In this document: positions 4,987-64,000 of the stretch, piece by piece
Position numbering within the stretch: position 1 is the first letter of the stretch
Layout of the letters: each line of letters opens with the position of its first letter
Source of the DNA: Laetmonice hystrix
Lineage: Eukaryota
Direction: 5' to 3'
Assembly (NCBI GenBank): GCA_965235115.1
Contig: OZ249441.1
Coordinates: 27,218,001-27,282,000, forward strand
DNA: 64,000 bases
Translations under genes and position numbers: made by a program
Notes under the pieces: generated by a model
Database searches by the model: none
What the model saw: only the letters and a program-made list of their open reading frames with translations
Told to the model about the DNA's origin: nothing

Positions 4987-6012
4987 ATGCCTCAAGTGAA
5001 GGGAACAGCCACCTGGTTGACGAACGTCCGCCAAGAGTTGCCTCGACAGAAGGTGTGGATAGATCAGAGCAAGGCCCGCATGGAGAATGCCCGAATGGAC
5101 GACGACCTGAGGGAGGCTGTGGACAGATTACATTTACGAAATCATCGCCACCTCACCGACACCAACTACGTGTTAGACGAGGTGAAGAGGGAGGTTGAAA
5201 AGTGGCAAACTATGCAGGAGATCGTAGCTAGGCGGCGTTGTAAATCGGCCTTTGTAAGCCGCAGTTCTGTGCAGAAGGTGGCCACACCAGACAATTCTGG
5301 AACAAGATGTAAAGGAAATCTCAGACACGCAAGGGAACAACCAGTTTCTTCTTCTGACATGAAAAGTCCTGGGTTCCAGAAAGCTTCAGAGAAGACACCT
5401 CGGCCTAAAACAGCAACTGCGGCAACAGGACAACGTGGACTGTCGGGACAGATTGGCCTGTACCCGGTCCAAGAGGACGGCACACCAGGACGGTATGACT
5501 CACGGTCCTCATCCGAGAAATCAGGGAACCCCCATCTGACATCAGCAACTCTCCGCCTGCCGCCGGGGAGGAGGAAACGCGCCAAAGTTTCCGTCAAAAG
5601 GCGGCACAAATCGCACTCCGCCTCGCTCGTTAGGAATAAATCTGACGAAGATGACCGATCTTGGGAGGGGGTTTCTCAGGGTGGACAGATGCGTAGAGAG
5701 CGTTCGAAAACGGCTGGGCCATCACGGTTACGGGTTCGGAGCACGGGGAGCACCAATGACGTCGGAGACGCGCTACTCGCAGACGAACCCGCGTCATTCA
5801 GTCAGCTGAAAGACAAGGTCCACATTGACTACGTTTCTCTGAGTCGCGAAGACTCTAAAAGGACGGACGCGATGAATCTTAGACACACACAACGTGCGTC
5901 AGATCAGATGGCACTTCAAATAAGGATTGATGCATTCTGTAAACGTATCGACGAGTTTAAAAAACGTTGCTCTCAAAATTCGGCTTCTTTTTCAAAAGTG
6001 CTTGAACTCTAA
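4987..6012 (+). CDS. Uncharacterised 341-aa protein (helical/coiled-coil N- and C-termini, basic Ser/Arg-rich disordered middle)
   Basis: Long ATG-initiated ORF that is GC-richer than its flanks and not repeat-derived. No family recognised. Confidence 0.7.
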   Translation: MPQVKGTATWLTNVRQELPRQKVWIDQSKARMENARMDDDLREAVDRLHLRNHRHLTDTNYVLDEVKREVEKWQTMQEIVARRRCKSAFVSRSSVQKVATPDNSGTRCKGNLRHAREQPVSSSDMKSPGFQKASEKTPRPKTATAATGQRGLSGQIGLYPVQEDGTPGRYDSRSSSEKSGNPHLTSATLRLPPGRRKRAKVSVKRRHKSHSASLVRNKSDEDDRSWEGVSQGGQMRRERSKTAGPSRLRVRSTGSTNDVGDALLADEPASFSQLKDKVHIDYVSLSREDSKRTDAMNLRHTQRASDQMALQIRIDAFCKRIDEFKKRCSQNSASFSKVLEL

Positions 6013-49973: not shown

Positions 49974-50459
49974 TCACTTCTTTGCCTTGTCGAAGTTGGG
50001 CGGTTTTGGCGGAGCTTTGCCCACCTGCTTGCCTCGCCAGTTGCCCTGCCAATCTGCCTGTTTACTTTGCCTATTTCGGGGCGGTTGGCGGATAAAGTTA
50101 CGGGCGTGCCGTGACGCCAGCAGTGGAGACGCCCTGTAGCCTACAGGAAACCCAGGCCTGGCCTGGCGCTGTTGTAACGGGACACCTACAGCTCCTCCAA
50201 CCTCGCAGCTCGCCTGAAGCTCCTGAACCAGGTTCTGAATGGCCTCCATCCCTGACCCCTGATTCTGCATCAGTGTTTGCTGCACAGCCGCCTGGTCGAG
50301 ATGTAGTAGGTTCTGAAGGACAGATGGGTCCATGCTGCGGAGGGTGCCCATGGCCGAGCTGATGACATTCAGGTCAGTAATTGAGGTGAGGTTCTGAACC
50401 TGCAGCGCCAAGAGTCTGTCATCAGGAGACATTCCGGCCAGGGCATTGAAGTTCGTCAC
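49974..50459 (-). CDS. Probable terminal coding exon (Gln/Asn/Leu-rich helical segment plus basic tail), most likely part of the zinc-finger gene
   Basis: Strong acceptor GTTGGTTTTCAG, then 161 open codons (VTNFNALAGMSPDDRLLALQVQNL...KPPNFDKAKK*). The upstream donor is not resolved. Confidence 0.55.
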   Translation of the reverse strand: MTNFNALAGMSPDDRLLALQVQNLTSITDLNVISSAMGTLRSMDPSVLQNLLHLDQAAVQQTLMQNQGSGMEAIQNLVQELQASCEVGGAVGVPLQQRQARPGFPVGYRASPLLASRHARNFIRQPPRNRQSKQADWQGNWRGKQVGKAPPKPPNFDKAKK

Positions 50460-52375
50460 CTGAAAACCAACAGAGTTAGAGCATACAATAATACCATAGT
50501 TCCACCAACACAAATTGTACAATGAATATCACTGTGGCGAGAGAGAAAAAAACCCGAGTAGTTCACTAAACTAGTGAACTATTGGTTCTTCCTCGTTATC
50601 CTGAGACTGACATATACCGTTATTGCTGAGCCATGTTGGCAACATAATCAATGTAAGGCATGTATAGGCTTGAGGTTTAATAGATTTATGTAGAGAAAAA
50701 TGCCAATAAGACACCACCAAGAAAACATCCAAGATGCAGCTAGAACACATGACGATCTTATGATCCAATCCTCTTTTCAAAGACTAGAGAGGTAACACCA
50801 CCATTACTTGGTAGGCTCGCAACACGAGATTCGTTGAATTTGTAGCAGCCTTTCTCTAATGACTCATTGCAAGGACGGCACTGAAGTCAAAAATAAAAAT
50901 CTGCTTTCCATTTGCAGCAATATGCAATCGGAAAAGCGGCAGGATACTCATCAAGCCGAAGAACACATAAAACCTCAATCTCACATGCACTCGAAATGTT
51001 TTGATCATCCGCCATTAGAAAGTATAGTGTCCAAGAAAGATTAAAATAAATAAATAAATAAATAAATAAATACAAGTCAGTTAGATTGTCTCATTATGTG
51101 ACCTTGGGAACAGAAAGCAGAATCAAAACCCGGGCCATTGAGGGCGAACACAGAATCAATCTAGCCTGGCCATGTCCTGAAACGGCTTCCATTGTCACAA
51201 ACCAAAGGCCCTTCCGTCACCTCTTTATCCGACATTTCATCCCCGTATCTCCAGGACCAGGTGAAATGTTCTTCTAGCGTATTAAACGAGGTAATCAAAG
51301 ATAGCATTCTCCGGAGTTCACTCCAAAATAGTTGCAGAATGTACATCTTGGTCGTTTTCCAGTACACTCCTTGGATTACATGTAACATGTACATGTAAAA
51401 ACCTCAAACTCCATGGGCACACCATACTGTTCAAGAATGGTTTAATTACCGTCCAACACTTTTGCGAATCAGAATGCACTGTCATTAAAATTGAATCATC
51501 TGATGAAATAGCTGCCACTTGATTCAACCTGCCCAGCATAAGAACCAATTTAACGACGGGGGTCATGAATGTGTGACCACTAGACAATAGAGAAAACATT
51601 AGTGGATGGTGAAATCGATTTCTCCGAAGTGCGACATGAAATCATGGTCTATTTCCTGAAGAAGAATGAAGAGATCCAAACAAGAGGACAAGACAAAGGA
51701 GGACACAGCGACCTTAACGTACCGTAATGTGGAGTGGTGGAATAAAAGGAAATGAAAACCCTTCAGTTCCAGGCTTCATCTCCTCCTTAATCATGAAATG
51801 CTAAAACAGATCCAGCACATCCAGAAGAGGTATACATTTGTACCTGTCCGGCCAGGAGACCCTTTGTGATCTAAAAAGGGGGAGGGGGCGTCCAACAAAA
51901 CTCACAGCACACACCATAGTCCTTAGCTCCTGGACAAATGAAGCTTTGACATTGATGGAAATGATCCTTGAATCTGTCACAAGATTCCCATATCATTTCC
52001 GAGCGTTACACAAACAATATTTGGAATAAACCACAGCTGCCCCTTAGAATACAGTTGAGTTGCTTGGAAGGAAGAATAATTCAGCTGAAATCCAAAAGGA
52101 TATATTCAGACTCAAGAGTTCGAAATACTTTAAGGCAAACATGACATTATTTATTGGCACATTTCTTTTGAGAGAGATATATCATGATATATCAGTATAT
52201 GTCACAAGCCAAGCCAAGTATATATCACAGACATTCATGAGCCATTCAACCTTACCTTACCTTATATCCACAGGGGTGATAACATATGTCTGTATATTAT
52301 AAGAAGACAATCTACTTGTATTTCATTTTACCATAATAAATGTGCAAGCCATCTGAAATACTATTTTCCACTGGG

Positions 52376-55300
52376 TCATGTACCCCGCGGCCAGCGCGGG
52401 TATGGATGCAGCCATGCTGGCTGTGAAACATTGACATGGTGGGACAGCCGAGAGTGGCGTTTGAGCCAGGGTGGAAGCGGTGGGCTCGGCACCAAGTTCT
52501 GATGAAGTGGGGGCCCCATAACATGACGGAATGGCACAGGACTAGTGGTCCTTGATCCACTCCCTAGCGTTCCAGTCCTCAGTCCCCTTCCAATAACACT
52601 AGGGTTTAAAGTTCTTAGTCCCCTTGCCATAATACTAGAACTAACTTGGCCCTTCCTTATTGCACTGGGACCCAGCGGCCTAATTCTTTGCATCATTGGT
52701 CCTATGGGACAAGGAGCTAGAGGGACAGGAACTGGGACGAAAATTATCGTGGGACGTTGATGCAACTGAGCTGGTCGTGTGTGTTGATGATGAGCATGGC
52801 TAGCTGTTTCACCTGAAGTCGAGCTATTTTTGATTCCTGAGTGAGGGGGACGTGAAAGGGAATAATTCTCCCCTTTTGGTGGAAGTTCGGATTGCTCCTT
52901 TGTTTGTTGGTCGGATGAGACACCCACTTTATTCAACACTGTGATGCAGTCACCGTCAATGTCGTCCCCACCATCCTTTAACCGTCTGAGGTCGGTATTA
53001 TCCGGCACTGTTGCAGGACTGTCTACAATTTCAATGTCCCCCTCAGGACGCTCGAGCCCTTCTAGCCTACCGTTGGTGTTTTCTGGTTCATGGTCATCCA
53101 CAGCTTCAGCTATAGGTAATGCTGAAGAGCATGAGGGAATGGGACTGGTTTGTAAATTAACTAATTGTGATAGACTGGAAGGTGAGGGGTTGTCATCCCT
53201 GACTTCCACAACATCACTGGATGATGGAATGCCGGTATCCTCTGTCCCTGGATTACCCAGTGATGTTGGACTGCTACCAACTGAGCTGGCCTCACTGAGG
53301 TCTCCAGTTCGAAGCAGAGGGCCAGGCACTGCCCCTTGGTCTGCATCAGGGGTTCTCACCTGACTTAAAGCCTGGGGGGCTGGCCCGAGCAGACCCTGCC
53401 CAGGGTTAGGACTCGGGCCAGGCTGGCCTAGGCCTTGGCCCATTACTGGGTTTAAACCTTGGCGCTGCCTCGGAGCCTGGTTCAGGCCCTGTGACACCAT
53501 CCCACCAGGTGCCATGACTTGGTTGGTTGGATTCCCGCCAGGAACTGTAGGGTGGAGACGTGGGATGTCCAAATCATCAACAACAGCTGAAACACAGGGA
53601 AAAAACAGCATAGAGCTCAGCTCAAATTCTCTACCAATCTCTGTTTTTCCATAAAGGTGGAATCAGGAAAAAATTAATTCATCATAAATAAATAACAATT
53701 CGACTTAGATAATACTTGACACTTAAAAACTAACATCTGCGAGGTGGTAACAAACATATGGGGATGACAAACTAAAAAATGGACGTCACGCTAATAGGCC
53801 CAAAATGTGAATGAAGATGTAGAAAATGCAATGGATCAGTGGCACTCGAGGGCAAACCTACCCGTGGCATGAGTGGGTGGAGGCATGGGGATATGAGCAA
53901 ACTTCTGCACGTAGTTCTCCCAGCCCAGGCTCAGCAACTCGCTCACACAATTCTGGGCACAGGGAAAAAGGTACGTCAGTAACACTGAAATTTACCTTAT
54001 GCACAGGTGAACAATTCTTGTATCCTTGACATTATCTCATTTTAAACCTAATTACAAATTTGAATACTGCTGATTATTTCCAGTAAGCAAACCAAATTAT
54101 GCCTTGTCTTACCCTGGTGTGCTTGTTGTTTGTAGTATGCTGAATCCATTGATGGAGAGATAGTGCCTTGGAATCACAAATCTGGACAACAGATATTGTT
54201 AAAGATCATTCTCAGTGATTTAAAATAACAGTAATTATAGATCTTTACTGTAAAGGCTTATCAAACATCCCAATAAATCAATTCCTGAACCAGGGGCCAA
54301 ATGCAGCTCTTCGTCCTATATTCTACAGAAATTTTACAATTTGATATCATTTGAAAGTCATCTTCTGTTTCAGTAATGTAGTTCATAGTCACTTACCGAA
54401 CATTTGTAGTCAAGGTAGACTCCGCTGACCACCAAGAGCTCTTTGTAAGTCTCCTGAAAACAGTAGAAGATTCCTACTTGAGTAATCAGTCCACTTGTAT
54501 TACATAAACTGACATCAATGAAGCACTTGTGAATCACGTCACTTTAGTTTCAATGTAGAACGAAGGACAAGGAAACATACCCTGTGTTCCTCTGGAAGAC
54601 ATGGTCCAAATGGAAGGGCGTCCAGGGCCAACAATCGGCCACCTGTACACAAAAAACATCTATCAACATCTATTAAAAAAAACATCTATAATGGCTCACG
54701 TGAACAATTAAAATAAGATAACCCTAGGTCCTCAACTATGCCACTGTCAATCACTCATTTGGCACACTAGTGCGGGCAGCAGCATGGGAGAAAATCAGCA
54801 GCCATAAGAGCCGCTTGTGATCTACACAGATGTGACATTGCAAAGAACAACAGGTGCTCTATTCTCCAGCAGATCCAAACATGTGCAGAAAAGCTTTGTT
54901 TCAAATCTTAACTATCAAAAAATGAAGTCCTAGGTGCCAGTCAATGTTAGGGGGTTATTGTATACTTACCATTTGTGAAAACCTTAGGCAGAGGGACATC
55001 TGCGTAGTATCGCATGAAGTCTTCAATTCCCATCTGGATCTGTCTGAGGACATACTTTCGACCATGGGCTCCACTTGTGAGATGGCCCCTCATGTCATCA
55101 AACTCCATTTGGCAAAGCTGTAGGTTAGAAAGGTGAAAATGGTATTAATTCATACTGGGTGCTTACAGTGATATAATGCTTGATTAAACACCAAATTCTT
55201 CAGCAATTGTTTCAGAAGAAAAAAGAAGCAATTTTATCATTTACATAAATAAGTACGTAGGATGTATATGGGGAACACAGCCTAAAAAATGTTATTTGAT

Positions 55301-57545
55301 TCGTCATATGTGCAGTTTCTGCAGCACTCGTCTGACGACTACCTGTTACCCGGTATCACTCCGATTACCCATCACATATCTATTAAATAGCAGAGTAGCT
55401 TTGCACACCAGTTACCTTGCAGACAGTATTGGAGTGTGGCCCCTGTGGCAGGAGACTTTTATCCTTGTAACAAAGCTTGCGGACCTGTGTATGAAGATTT
55501 GCCATGGCTGTTGGTTCAAGTTGGGTCCTCATCAACTTTTTGCTGTAGACGTACACCCACTGGGCCTGCGTCAGGGGGCCTCCATTGTATTCTGTGCATC
55601 AAAACAAAACTTCTAAGGTTCCAGACGCTTTAAGCTTACGCTTACTCAGATATCTAGTCAAGAAATAATGGCATGGTTTAACCAAATAGGCATTTATCAG
55701 TTATATATATTTGATAAACCAATGCATTTTATGAATTTTCCAGGAGTGTGACAGGTTTTCTAGGTCTTTCCAGCACCAGAAAAGCGATTTTTGATTTTTC
55801 AGGACTTCCCCGGAGTTTTACCATGTCTGTGAACCCTGTAACTGCAGACATCAGGGAAACACTGTGATTTCATTAAGTACTACATAGTTGACAGCAGACT
55901 CAAGGGAGTGAGCGAGTAATGTCGTTTTTACACCGTGCCGAAATCTAAGGCTATCTTCATGGTGAAAAGTAACAATACTGAAGCAGACTTAAGGGCACAA
56001 GGAACATTGAATTTTAAATAAACTTTGTTATTTCACTGACTTGGAGGCAGATCATCATCAGGTTTTGGCATGACCTCTGTGCCACCGAGCCACTCCCCTT
56101 TATCCTCATCCATTTGGCCTCCCTCCTCAGATTCACTGCAAATAAAACATATAAGACTCAGTTTGCCAATCTCCCTCGACAGTCACATAAGATAACATCA
56201 AGTCACCTGAAACGTGTACAACTGAATCAGTCCGTATGGAACGCGCATTATGGACTTCCCCTGAACGACACTGACAGATGGAATGTGCATATATAATAAA
56301 ATGGTGGAGGTGCCTACCTTGGTGGGCCCTCCCAATGAGTCCCTCCGATCCAGTCTCCCTCCGGCAGATTAGCTCTTTGATCTCTCCTCAGACTTTCACT
56401 CTCGGCTGTCAGACTGGGCTTCCTCTTCGCCTCTAATTCTCTCAACTCCAGCTCTCCCATCTCATGGGGCCTGCTGCCCCCACTTCCTCCTCCTCTTCTC
56501 CCCCCTTGGAACCGGTTCTCATCATCTCTCCTTTCTCTCTCTCCTCTCCTGTAAAGACTTTCCCTGTGTTCCTCCATCTCAGCTCGGTTTTTTTCAATCA
56601 TCTTCTGTGTATGCAGCAGTCCCTTGCAGTGTATCTTGTACATCTGCAATGACAGCATTTCCCTTCATGTATACCGCATGTTTCAGCAAGCTTACTTTTA
56701 TTTACATTCTTACTTCACATGTACCAGTTAGTAACTGTATTATCTCTTACATACATGCATGGGCCCCGGTATCCAGTTGATATTCCAATGAGCGATATTA
56801 CCCGACATTTCCCAAAATTCTCAGGGGTAGTCGCGGTGATAACGATTCTCAGTTTCGCTCAATCGGTTACCACCTGCGGCCACCCCTGGGATCTTGTTGA
56901 ATAACCTTTACAAAATCTATAAATAATCTGAATCTAAAGCTATACTCAAGTGGTATACCTCTTTACTCGGGCAGTGTATATCACAGAGCACACAGTACAT
57001 AAACTGGCCTGCGTCATTCTGCCTGCTGCTGTCAGCGGATGTTGTGGCTGGCGGTCCCCATCTTGTGCCTCGAGTCCTCTCTGGTTCTGCCCGAATGGCC
57101 GAATACCTGAGGAAAGGGTAAATAGAAATACAACTGTTGGTTCAAAGTTTGGAGCCCTCACAGCATTACATCACATTTTGCCAATTATCTCAGGAAGGGT
57201 TCTTATGAAGGTTATTATCCTACTGACACCACTATGCCAAAGCATTTTTCTTTCTGGTAGTTCGTTTACCTTCCGTTTACTAAGTTACTGGTATGCTGCC
57301 TAATTTAGAAGAATCGATGTCAATATGATTACCAGGACTTAGTTTTCACTGATTAATGATAATTTTTGCCCCCCTCCTCCCCCATTCCTCTATGGTTTCT
57401 AGTCCATCAAGGGAGTTTCATCTGGTGGTGATCTTGTTTTACCTGTCCGTCTCCTCATAGCGGTAACCTTCAATATCAGGCTGCTTGCGTACCCGGCTCC
57501 ACGAGCTGGCTTCATCATACCTCAGATCTCCTCTTCTCTCGCTCC
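52376..57545 (-). CDS. Multi matrin/U1-type C2H2 zinc-finger protein (3 fingers) with Pro-rich disordered C-terminus; start not resolved
   Basis: Phase-consistent exons 57545-57443, 57106-56959, 56643-56318, 56135-56041, 55591-55416, 55117-54970, 54642-54581, 54453-54397, 54181-54113, 53952-53862, 53586-52376. Fingers: YCVLCDIHCPSKEMYKIHCKGLLH, VCKLCQMEFDDMRGHLTSGAH, YKCSICDSKALSLHQWIQHTTNNKH. Confidence 0.85.
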
Positions 57546-60500: not shown

Positions 60501-61487
60501 CACGCGGACAATATCCATAAAGACTATACAAGCTGTATTCGTCTCGAAATACACGTATACAACAGGCGTTAGGCCTTTATGACATAGTTACCCTTCCCCC
60601 GCCCCCTCATTTTCCTGGACACACACTGGTACAAACTGCTACAATATTCCTAGCCAACAGCAAGTATTTTAAAGCACACGAGCTCACGCACACCATATGC
60701 CTAAATTACTCTACAAGCTGGCTCTCTTTATGGACATTGACAACGACAGTCAGACGAATGAGCTGTTATATATACAAGATACCTTATTTCTATCGAAAAC
60801 GGACCATAATAATCAATGGTTATCATACGCTTGTGATTGTAATTGTTTACCTCCAACTAGACATTTACAGGTTAATGACCTATGGCTGTAAACTTACTGG
60901 AGGCGCAATGCTGGATACAAACCTCCATACACCGAGTTGCTGCGTTTTCGGGGAAAAGCATTGATAAAGGACAGCCATAAAAATTCTGCTTTGTTGAAAA
61001 AGAAAGGGACAAAGAGAACCCGAGAATTCACCAATTACATTAAATAAACCTTTTTCTTGGGGCGGGGGGCACTATACACGCACCAGGCTTTGCTCAGCGC
61101 AACGACCTGCGTCTAATGTCATTCTTGTGTTTCCCCCCAGTCTGGGAAACTTTTTCCAGCTAGAAACATGATACTGTACATCTTAAAACCTAAAGAAGTA
61201 TCTGCTGATTTATGTGGACATTCCACATTTCTTACCCTAGATGCCAACATTGCATTTATAACATCGACTTTCAGACTTTATTGGCTTGCTAACTATCATG
61301 CACCATACGTAATAAAACGTTACAGCTATACAAGCAAACATCATATCAGGACAGAGGCAACTCATTTGTACTCATCACAAACATTCCTACAAATTACTTG
61401 TAGTATACTTTCATTATCTTATGTGGCAGCAATTTCTGCATCCTAACATAACGCAATATCGCTGTTTGATGCAAATTAATCACAATT

Positions 61488-64000
61488 TCACGGTGTAGTC
61501 ATTTTCTGAGGCTTCACATAGATCAGGTTAGAAGAGCCCTTTGTCGCACTTTGCATCTTGTTGCTCTGATCGGGAGGGGTTCTGTCCTCAGTTTTCTGTC
61601 CCTCATTCTCAGGCCCCTGATTTGGAGGGTCTTGCTGGGATGCACTCTCAGCAATTTTCAGACTCTGATCAAACAAACATTCTGGACGCTGGATTCTGAT
61701 CAGCAGTTGCCAAGATGCCAACAGACACATTGCACCAGTATTGTTCACATGGACCCCATCACGCCTATAAAGGCAACTGTCGTGCCAATTGGTGTTAACG
61801 TCATGATCAATAATGAAATACTTCAGCCCACTCTCGCGCAGATAACGTTCCACTAAGCCATTTGCCTCTAAGCGAAGGTGTTCTGTCTTGTCAAACGTTG
61901 GGTTGACACCAAAGTTTCCGTGACGAACTAGAATATTGGACCAGACCAGCACGACCTCTGGTACCAACCTAGAGATGTCTTTGATCATCTGCTGAATGCT
62001 TTGATTGATCTTTTCTTGATCAAATCGTACCAGGTCCTCAGTTCCTACATGAAGGATCATCACTTCTGGTTTCAAGGGCTGGAACTTTTTTAGGAGGTCT
62101 TCCAGAGTTTTTCCCACAGATGAGAACTGCAGGGTTGGGTACGCTAAATAACGGATGCATGAATTGGATGCATTTTGGGTGAGACCATTTTGGCTGGTGG
62201 CCGCCATCTGGGTAACGAGATATATCGTGGCATCACCAAGAATCCACACCTGACGTCGTTCACTGGCTGTTTAAGTGCAAAAAAAAATCATTGATTATAA
62301 AGCATTGCCAAAAATTGCGATTAAAGAAAAACGTATACGCTCACAAGGTCACTCAATGTAAACGGAAATAGCGACAAATGAAACTTAATATGACTACCTT
62401 ACCTTAGTTTATAGACAGTATATGGTTACCTTATATTTAATCGGAACATTAATGTTTTTGAGATATCGCTGGGGTGGGGGCTAAAAACTTTCTATCCAAC
62501 ATTCATTGCAGGTATTATTTTCAGAGTTTTGGAGCCAGGACTCATTATTATATAATATGCAACCTTCACTGACCTTTCAAGGTCACTGAAAGTAAAGAAC
62601 ATTAGTTTTAAGATAAATATCTCATACGATTTCTAATTTGTGAATTACAGTATAACCTGCACCCTCTTGTTTTTTTTCAAGCTATAGGCCAAAATAGCAT
62701 GCGTTACATATTATGGAGAGGAAATAGAACAAATATGGCCATAAATTAGTGTAAAATGTCAACGTTGTATACACTTCTAGGAAATCACTGACCATGGCTA
62801 TACAGAAAAACGTAAGTCCAAACAGATGGATGTACGGATCGAAGACAAATCGTACTCCCCTTGAAATTGATGGCTGACAGCAAATCCTTATTAGACAGTT
62901 TCCCACATGAACAATAACATTTCCTGAGACGTCAAATTATATTCTGTATTCCCTCTTTCTCAAAAAGATGCCATACAAAAATGTTTCCTTACGTGTCATA
63001 TAATCAAAGTTACAACACATGTCCATAGAATTATATTATATACTTACAACCCTTTCCATTCCAGAGCAGCAGTGGTGGCGGAATGTCGCTCTCATCAAGC
63101 CTCGTCAGGGCAGTTTGTAGTTTTCCACCAGTCCAACCTGGCTTTTTATTTTCCTTAACAGGCCAATCCTTTTCGCGCGTATATTCCACCTTCTCTTTTA
63201 TCATGGCTCTATATGCTGCAGGATTATTCAGTTCCTCCGCAGATATACGCGACGTCTGAAAAGGAAGCATTGCTTGCCTTTCTTTTCGACTAGGCTTTGA
63301 TCCTTGGGAACCAGGCATTGGTCTTTGTGGTCCGGGTCCTTGTGGCATTGGATCTTGTTTTCTGGTCTCATGTGGCAGTGATCCTTGTGGACTGTCCCCA
63401 TGTGGCATTGGCCCTTGCGGACCGAGCCCATGTGACACTTGTCCTTGTGGACCTGGCCCATGTGGCATCGGTCCTTGCAGACCTGTCCCGTGTGGCATTG
63501 GTCCTTGTGGGCCTGGCCCATGTGGCATTGGTCCTTGTGGACCTGGTCCATGTGGCATTGGTCCTTGGGGACCGGGCCCATGGAACATTGGTCCTTGTGG
63601 ACTGGGCCCATAGGGCACTGGTCCTTGTGGACCAGGCCCATGGGGCATTGGTCCTTGCGGACCAGGCCCATGTGGCATTGGTCCTTGGGGACCGGGCCCA
63701 TGGGGCATTGGTCCTTGGGGACCGGGGCCACATGGCATTGGTCCTTGTGGACCGGGGCCACCTGGCATAGGTCCCTGGGGACCGGGTCCATATGGCATTG
63801 GTCCTTGTGGACCCGGCCCAGGTGGCATTGGTCTGGGTGGCATAGGGCCACGAAACATTGGTACAGGTTGCATAGCCCAAGGTGGCATAGCCCTAGGAGG
63901 CATTGTTCCTGGGGGCATGGAGCGAGGTGGCATTGACCCAAGTGGTATAGCCCCAGGCGGCACAGCTCCTGGGGGAAAAGCCCCTGGTGGCATGGCTCCA
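61488..64000 (-). CDS. Pro/Gly/Met repeat protein with C-terminal SGNH/GDSL hydrolase-like domain; 5' end beyond the window
   Basis: Exon >64000-63048 (donor T|GTAAGT, phase 1) joins in frame to exon 62266-61488 (acceptor TTAAACAG). SGNH blocks VWILGDAT, ILHVGTED, VWSNILVR, DGVHVN. AATAAA on the minus strand at 61277-61282. Confidence 0.85.
63310..63993 (-). repeat. Coding tandem repeats: 17 x 30-nt GPGPQGPMPH units (63310-63819) preceded by ~11 MPPxx pentapeptides
   Basis: Read directly from the translation; the repeat explains the overlapping ORFs called in the other frames. Confidence 0.9.

Follow-up and report, generated by a model that had tools for sequence, protein, structure and literature searches.

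We analysed a stretch of 64,000 nucleotides (hereafter the window) from Laetmonice hystrix, which comprises positions 27,218,001 to 27,282,000 of contig OZ249441.1 in assembly GCA_965235115.1. Near the end of the window, on the minus strand, lies an exon, B1, that encodes a domain with the SGNH-hydrolase fold. B1 is the terminal coding exon of a gene whose preceding exon, A1, encodes a long low-complexity region rich in Arg/Ser (RS) dipeptides. A second, diverged cassette of the same make, A2-B2, lies between A1-B1 and a shared upstream exon. The open frame of B1, 259 codons and a stop, has no interruption. Its acceptor, ttaaacag/CC (the slash marks the splice site), stands in phase 1 behind a polypyrimidine tract, and the first two bases of the exon finish a split codon, which was numbered as residue 1 of the exon product; codons were read off the window sequence. 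Table 1 summarizes the features of the locus.

Table 1. Features of the exon B1 locus. Positions are those of the window unless given as genome coordinates.
Feature	Position	Strand	Details
Terminal coding exon B1	61488..62266	-	2 bases of a split codon, 258 codons and a stop at 61488-61490
SGNH-hydrolase fold	61683..62254	-	Residues 5-195 of the exon B1 product; AlphaFold2, Foldseek, VIA, Pfam
Block I, G11-D12-A13	62229..62237	-	Codons ggt gat gcc; Ala13 (gcc, 62229-62231) replaces the Ser nucleophile
Block II position, Thr45	62133..62135	-	Replaces the oxyanion-hole Gly (aligns with ZfL2-1 G165)
Block III, G75-T76-E77-D78	62034..62045	-	Glu77 replaces the oxyanion-hole Asn (ZfL2-1 N195)
Block V, D170-G171-V172-H173	61749..61760	-	Triad Asp and His kept
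C-terminal tail, residues 196-259	61491..61682	-	Polar, low complexity; 64 residues past the fold
AATAAA polyadenylation-type signal	61277..61282	-	About 205 nt 3' of the stop
Intron A1-B1, phase 1, 781 nt, GT..AG	62267..63047	-	Joint in a contig of run X4
Exon A1, 3' part in the window	63048..64000	-	Whole exon 3153 nt, to window-equivalent 66200 (G000:C6:27281048-27284200)
HGPGPQGPMP array, 17.3 copies of a 30-nt unit	63314..63833	-	Tandem Repeats Finder (TRF): 81% matches, score 606; translation
Pre-domain segment KKPGWTGGKLQTALTRLDESDIPPPLLLWNGKG, 33 residues, end of exon A1	63049..63147	-	Conserved in the paralogue and other loci
Paralogous cassette A2 + B2	G000:C6:27286242-27290036 (window-equivalent 68242-72036; L002, L005/L006)	-	Between the shared upstream exon and A1-B1
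Upstream exon, 122 nt, ending ..DRDRFKDNRQDTNRDQYSYEDGPRFSRLYSSASREPESLG	G000:C6:27293826-27293947 (L006 4826-4947)	-	gtaagt donor, phase 1

The fold was assessed by sequence searches and structure prediction. A word-indexed protein search with the 259-residue exon product gave no match at an expectation value (E) of 1e-3 or below, and the Pfam profile Lipase_GDSL_2 (PF13472) matched with E 3.7e-6 and 28 bits, under its 32.9-bit cut-off. The exhaustive phmmer search against 1.84 billion representatives resulted in 196 relatives at E<=1e-3, none of them above 33% identity. From an alignment of 73 sequences, AlphaFold2 modelled the domain with a predicted local distance difference test (pLDDT) of 93, a predicted template modelling score (pTM) of 0.89 and the strand-helix order of SGNH hydrolases. 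Superposed with Foldseek and VIA-align, the model fits dozens of solved SGNH enzymes over about 175 residues with a root-mean-square deviation of 2.4-3.0 A; more than 50 solved SGNH entries match at Z 16-18.6, with a Foldseek probability of 1.00. The model has the three-layer alpha/beta/alpha architecture of the superfamily, built on five parallel strands, with blocks I, II, III and V in order, and the match to the SGNH fold is far beyond chance. The pLDDT falls to 61 over the last ten modelled residues, and the tail past the fold differs strongly in sequence between B1 and its paralogue. A homodimer prediction of the domain scored 0.03 and gave no verdict.

The Ser of block I, the Gly of block II and the Asn of block III that a competent SGNH esterase carries are all replaced, and the Asp and His of block V are present. 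The correspondence of Thr45 to G165 of the zebrafish ZfL2-1 esterase comes from pairwise and profile alignments to its structure, 4C1B, and from the family alignment. Within that alignment, 57 of the 73 sequences keep the set S-N-D-H, and the nucleophile column is Ser in 60 of 73; the set A-E-D-H occurs only in the exon B1 copy and its paralogue. In block III, Asn is found in 61 of the 67 relatives outside a clade of sequences with a missing nucleophile (the 'dead' clade, described below), and Glu or Asp throughout that clade. Because Ser, Gly and Asn are all replaced and the oxyanion hole holds a carboxylate, the domain is very unlikely to hydrolyse esters, as predicted from these residues. 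An initial annotation of this DNA had described the motifs in the same way (GDA, GTED, an intact DGVH and no evident block II Gly), correctly throughout, and the missing Gly proved to be Thr45. Its prediction of a pseudo-esterase gains from the replacement of Ser, block II Gly and block III Asn in both tandem copies and in the nearest relatives. It had also placed the whole domain in one exon, and residues 5-195 indeed all fall within B1.

For the splicing of the gene, four public runs of one sample were inspected at the locus. Runs X1-X3 are DNA-like, with even depth that includes the intron. The small run X4, which we take as RNA from its exon-only coverage, covers the exon parts, has no depth in two bins wholly inside the A1-B1 intron and extends over the 3' region that holds the AATAAA signal. 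One X4 contig joins positions 1266 and 2048 of sequence L005, equivalent to 62266 and 63048 of the window, with CT..AC on the plus strand and hence GT..AG on the minus strand. This joint matches exactly the acceptor and the donor (GGT T/gtaagt) predicted from the sequence, and the split codon T+CC reads Ser. The fusion to a low-complexity protein, which the initial annotation had proposed and for which it wanted a spliced joint to the repeat exon, is therefore seen directly in this contig. A second X4 contig continues past 62266 with 30 letters from outside exon A; their unique genome match, G000:C6:27293826-27293855, lies 13.6 kb upstream, in the 122-nt upstream exon. This transcript skips A2, B2 and A1 with the frame kept, so that one isoform lacks the entire disordered exon. 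Two small phase-1 upstream exons lie in sequence L006, the 122-nt exon and another at about 5250-5310; between them they encode ..VQEEYQEWKEKEQLRQLTL and DRDRFKDNRQ..REPESLG.

Exon A1 comprises 1051 codons of low complexity within a 1111-codon open frame in L005, with the acceptor tatacag/GA, the donor given above and phase 1 at both ends. It encodes, in order, an RS array (a 36-nt unit repeated 14 times, giving 12-residue units of the SRNRLRSRSPEQ type), stretches rich in Lys, Ser and Glu, the HGPGPQGPMP repeats and the 33-residue pre-domain segment. With such an extended region of Arg/Ser dipeptides, the predicted product would fall among the SR-related proteins, and A2 encodes a similar array. 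Since all exons are in phase 1, either cassette, or B1 alone, could be attached to the common upstream exons as an alternative 3' end. The simplest reading is one transcription unit with shared 5' exons joined to A2-B2, A1-B1 or B1 alone; of these three proposed joins, A1-B1 and upstream-to-B1 are the two observed.

When the exon B1 product was searched against all six frames of the 627-Mb assembly, only B1 itself and one further match were returned; this is the paralogue B2, which lies about 6 kb further along the same strand and is 46-48% identical. B2 likewise encodes a dead SGNH domain, with the motifs GDA, G-A-E-D and D-G-C-H and with Ala at the block II Gly position. Its acceptor, aaacag/CC, is that of B1, and its upstream exon ends in a like motif and a like phase-1 donor. 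This exon, A2, has 2652 nt, carries the RS array and ends in the segment TKPGWTGKKLLTALRTNKDSIPPLHMW. A1 and A2 both start with tatacag/GAGTG and are in phase 1 at both ends, and the two disordered exons can be aligned solely at their ends. B1 and B2 have a separate stop each, and signals of poly(A) type follow both.

Over 197 codons, the paralogous domains differ by a dN of 0.46 and a dS of 1.58, giving a dN/dS of about 0.29, which is a rough value with dS near saturation. Variants between contigs within the sample comprise 1 synonymous change in exon B, and 8 synonymous and 6 replacement changes in exon A. By this comparison of sequences, the domain is kept under purifying selection.

The closest sequence kinship of the domain is to retroelement esterases. 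The best sequence match in the Protein Data Bank (PDB) is 4C1B, the ORF1p esterase of zebrafish ZfL2-1, with E 6.7e-4 for the single sequence. With the family profile, 4C1B is reached at E 1.1e-18, the next natural enzyme at 2e-6 and platelet-activating factor acetylhydrolase (PAF-AH) Ib at about 1e-5. The retroelement-like style that the initial annotation had noted in the motifs is thus borne out, and the grouping with ordinary cellular GDSL enzymes that it had named as a counter-sign was not found, the profile favouring 4C1B. Structural scores do not set 4C1B apart from other SGNH structures; its crystal form is a domain-swapped dimer (PMC3905857), and the swap may be the reason for the poor superposition. 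SGNH open reading frames (ORFs) are documented in CR1/L2/RTEX LINEs, in Ngaro and Penelope-like elements and in some long terminal repeat (LTR) elements (PMC3905857, PMC9210276, PMC5408684). In one relative, P0116, a recombinase-like motif apparently lies directly upstream of the domain; this is our own reading of the sequence, with no Pfam confirmation. The profile matches support the assignment to the retroelement-type esterases, and we infer that the module may have come from, or may share a pool with, retroelement esterases.

Exon B1 resembles the esterases of ZfL2-1 ORF1p, of CR1/L2/RTEX and of Ngaro in fold, in block spacing and in the style of the HxGxxD and DGxH motifs, and in these elements, as here, the domain accompanies RNA-associated protein parts. 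The ZfL2-1 esterase is active and has the full set S143/G165/N195/D279/H282 (PMC3905857), whereas S, G and N are replaced in exon B1, which belongs to a spliced, two-copy host gene. Unlike the retroelement esterases, exon B1 has no reverse transcriptase (RT), recombinase or gag near it.

A profile search of the Laetmonice hystrix genome resulted in 38 family matches, that is, at least 36 besides the window copy and its paralogue. Eleven of the other copies were translated. All are single intronless ORFs with Ser and His, and all but one have Asn; several are near-identical and adjoin a gag-like ORF, one adjoins an RNase H-like frame, and another two belong to LINE ORF1s that also encode KH or NADAR domains. 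Copies L012, L013, L015 and L017 (on C20, C6, C8 and C5) belong to a multi-copy element in which an intact SGNH ORF (GDS, GGND, DGVH) adjoins a gag-like ORF of about 450 residues with a Cys-rich motif at its end; L012 and L013 are near identical, so the element family is young. Copy L030 (C1:22453000-22457500) is an ORF1-type protein of 568 residues with a coiled coil, SGNH and KH, for which at least 8 near-identical KH matches occur in the genome, and L031 (C3:963500-967000) is an ORF1-type protein of 324 residues with an NADAR-like part and SGNH. For the A1-B1 cassette, no transposon ORF was found in the flanks (ORF lists of the window and L005). Exon B1 thus shows none of the marks of a mobile element, namely an adjacent RT, tyrosine recombinase (YR) or gag, many copies and no introns. 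The initial annotation had named many copies with transposon flanks as a sign of a mere insertion, and the search found two copies and no such flanks. Exon B1 is the terminal exon of a host gene and not a transposon insertion.

Four ORFs from other assemblies, P0010, P0005, P0004 and P0042, come next in closeness among full-length relatives, and in these the nucleophile is missing. Across these dead relatives the nucleophile column holds Thr or Met (Thr in P0010 and P0005; the sequence of P0042 does not include that part), block III has Glu or Asp, and Tyr replaces the block V His. Orthologues that retain the Ser, a further counter-sign of the initial annotation, did not appear, as no relative above 33% identity was found and the nearest ones are without Ser. 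The four relatives and the window pair form one group in the tree, apart from the transposon copies of the same genome, with a support of 92-93 in the Shimodaira-Hasegawa-like approximate likelihood ratio test (SH-aLRT). At the loci of three dead relatives (L003, L004 and L036), the upstream exon is highly charged and repetitive, with RS dipeptides in L003 and RD/RE-type composition in L004 and L036. These upstream exons end in a PG[WM]..L..L segment that can be aligned with the pre-domain segment of A1: FVPGMHQGELEKVLEDQDFDRLNPIFVVRK; FIPGMRGKPLQDALEKRDFSRLVPIFVVKK; HMGLPESQVKGLVAKQDWNELGEVFVTRTNP. All three loci share a phase-1 intron 5-8 residues ahead of strand 1, which was read directly in L003 and L004, and P0010 has an RGG-rich C-terminal tail. 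Upstream of catalytically intact relatives, the segment is absent, bar a faint echo in Mytilus CIR. Since the block III Glu/Asp is common to the dead clade and the other positions are replaced variously, the sequences fit an old loss of activity, which would have been followed by drift of the catalytic positions no longer needed. Because the tree support is moderate and the grouping with own-genome transposons is not rejected, the shared intron and pre-domain segment are a stronger argument than the tree for an old gene family over a local capture.

We consider it reasonably probable that exon B1 encodes an old, host-kept, non-enzymatic SGNH module, C-terminal on the RS-rich disordered protein of a host gene. 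A non-catalytic binding or structural module, kept by purifying selection, would then end a very long disordered protein of SR-related type. The two-exon cassette, a disordered exon and a dead-SGNH exon, was duplicated in tandem, and the alternative 3' ends would yield isoforms that differ in the disordered region and in the SGNH module. The domain may be a non-catalytic adaptor that gives one specific contact to a multivalent disordered scaffold. This contact would be made with a protein or a small ligand, with no RNA binding by the domain itself, and the diverged cassettes would supply alternative versions of the adaptor. The protein would act in a nuclear RNA-protein assembly. The adaptor role is favoured because the fold is under selection and always terminal to charged disordered regions like those of splicing-related and nuclear ribonucleoprotein (RNP) proteins.

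Several points weigh against this reading. Asp12, Asp170 and His173 are kept in both copies of the Laetmonice hystrix genome, so residual or altered chemistry is possible. The dead clade is only moderately supported, long branches could contribute to it, and an approximately unbiased (AU) test did not reject the grouping of the window pair with the transposon copies of its own genome (p-AU 0.29). The domestication that the initial annotation had suggested is one possible source of the retroelement-type kinship, besides common ancestry and capture in the opposite direction; the tree is no proof of an old origin, and a link to the genome's own transposons is compatible with it. No record states what kind of run X4 is, each splice join is seen in one contig with 30 letters on its short side, and dN/dS suffers from the saturation already mentioned. 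Additionally, no RNA-binding domain was found in the gene: in a genome-wide scan no KH_1 (PF00013) match lay near the locus, and GxxG-type motif searches over 14.6 kb upstream gave no plausible exon, where short split exons could escape.

The retained residues would also suit a domain that is still an enzyme with an unorthodox set, for example Thr14 or Asp12 with Asp170-His173. Asp12 and the block V Asp and His are conserved in both copies, a Thr follows the Ala in both (GDAT), and in P0010 and P0005 the nucleophile itself is replaced by Thr. However, three of the four S/G/N positions are replaced together, and the oxyanion-hole Glu would repel the tetrahedral intermediate. The His is replaced by Tyr in other members of the clade, and a clade-wide function must therefore be independent of the triad; we hold continued catalysis to be highly unlikely. 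Most improbable of all, in our estimate, is a neutral leftover, in which the esterase ORF of a retroelement was exonised as a 3' end and drifts without function. The domain is of retroelement type, it occupies one terminal exon that has a stop and a poly(A) signal of its own, many transposon-borne copies occur in the genome, and the AU test permits kinship with them. Yet a drifting ORF would hardly keep its 259-codon frame intact in both copies at the identity and dN/dS reported above, nor would it be predicted to fold at high confidence. The exon layout and the pre-domain segment recur at loci in other assemblies, and no transposon genes lie in the flanks.

A dead SGNH domain that contacts RNA by a basic surface and seeds RNP granules would have a precedent in the OSK domain of Oskar, an RNA-binding, non-catalytic SGNH fold (PMC3905857), and a host protein with RS and repeat regions would suit it. 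OSK, too, is an SGNH-like fold without catalysis that is combined with other parts in a protein of RNA-protein assemblies, and Oskar is a known case of a modular protein that carries a non-catalytic SGNH domain. However, OSK pairs with LOTUS and has a basic RNA-binding surface, whereas exon B1 pairs with RS- and Pro-rich disordered regions, shows no LOTUS-like partner domain and is not basic. Its domain is near neutral, with an isoelectric point (pI) of 6.66 and a net charge of -1 (paralogue pI 6.41), against a median pI of 9.6 in the catalytically intact relatives. OSK was absent from the PDB sequence matches up to E 10, from the family-profile matches and from the best 50 structural matches of each fold search. 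Judged by these comparisons, neither kinship in sequence or structure, nor a LOTUS partner, nor a basic surface appears to connect the two. A bacterial origin is proposed for OSK (PMC7250577), whereas the exon B1 domain is of retroelement type. We therefore regard an Oskar-like role as unlikely, and the parallel drawn by the initial annotation does not extend beyond analogy. The role in RNP granules that it had suggested would rest on the RS array, a Q/N-rich upstream exon and relatives fused to RNA-binding modules, and nothing in the domain itself speaks for it.

PAF-AH Ib alpha subunits, including the inactive insect homologues, have the same fold (Z about 17.6). The insect homologues are a precedent for the loss of activity within SGNH proteins (PMC3905857). 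In contrast to exon B1, PAF-AH Ib alpha gives a far weaker profile match, is without a disordered region and has another gene structure. Full-text literature searches found no paper on an RS-rich protein whose host gene encodes a catalytically dead SGNH domain of retroelement type. To our knowledge, only a handful of proteins have a non-catalytic SGNH domain, foremost among them Oskar and the insect homologues of PAF-AH.

Three side observations concern the surroundings of the gene. Upstream, at L028 3934-4485 (G000:C6:27302934-27303485, minus strand), lies an open segment rich in Gln, Asn, Ser, Gly and Tyr, prion-like and with repeated 'LGY' motifs, which is a candidate only for membership of the SGNH gene. 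A short repeat inside the A1-B1 intron, at about 62340-62421, is covered by the DNA-like runs at a roughly 20-fold excess, with numerous divergent loose ends, and probably represents a small mobile element of high copy number. Downstream of the SGNH gene, on the minus strand at 49974-56658, a further gene with disordered regions is suggested by long Gln/Gly/Pro-rich open segments and by an RGG-like stretch (..FQGGRRGGGSGGSRP..). The upstream part of the SGNH gene was also considered as an orthologue of CIR1 or of a Surp protein (compare Mytilus CIR, P0041). This was rejected, as the CIR1 exons lie on another chromosome (C12) and there was no Surp match.

The same domain family as exon B1 occurs in a number of annotated animal proteins, namely the 'SRRM2-like' proteins of Xenopus and Megalops, Mytilus 'CIR', Tubulanus LOC141903815 and cold-shock proteins of fish. 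As here, they have a long disordered or RNA-binding N-terminal part and a C-terminal SGNH domain. They differ from exon B1 in that S-N-D-H is kept in those examined, and identity to exon B1 is at most 33%. Catalytically intact members stand C-terminal to SAP and RRM in Tubulanus (XP_074648247) and to Cir_N in Mytilus CIR. In P0041, two Surp modules precede the intact SGNH domain; the contigs behind it, uniformly about 5 kb in size, are possibly transcripts. CSDE1-type cold-shock domains precede a C-terminal SGNH domain in three fish, a dsRNA-type zinc finger (zf-JAZ) precedes it in Amphiura, and RS-rich regions precede it in the Xenopus and Megalops proteins. Together these sequences (P0026, P0041, P0049, P0038/P0044/P0065, P0008, P0018 and P0053, from a nemertean, a mussel, fishes, a brittle star and frogs) carry a C-terminal SGNH domain whose catalytic residues are mostly intact. 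Some of the fusions to RNA-binding parts may be gene models joined to transposon ORFs. A different arrangement is seen in P0001, P0002, P0003 and P0006, 'uncharacterized' proteins of 1900-3100 residues from a gecko and clupeid fish, which contain 4-6 tandem copies of the N-terminal half of the domain, many with an altered block I or III (GDS, GHA, GQS; GEED, GEKD).

The biological role of the L2/CR1 and Ngaro retroelement esterases is still unsettled. The exon B1 locus offers a tractable case for what the SGNH fold binds once catalysis is lost, and it would connect this fold with RNA-protein assemblies outside the context of transposition. The two cassettes, paired and diverged, amount to a natural experiment on the joint evolution of a pseudo-enzyme module and its disordered partner. 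If the animal fusions are real, the module would be recurrently tied to RNA-binding proteins in hosts, as it is in ORF1 proteins. More tentatively, and with considerable doubt, we suggest that, in animals at large, genes for nuclear RNA-binding or disordered proteins adopted the retroelement esterase module, either several times or on a single very early occasion, the exon B1 locus being a lineage in which the module became a non-catalytic adaptor offered as alternative C-terminal cassettes. If so, these proteins would form an undescribed class of RNP-associated esterases and pseudo-esterases, and the substrate of the ORF1p esterase would lie in RNA-protein particles, not in membranes.

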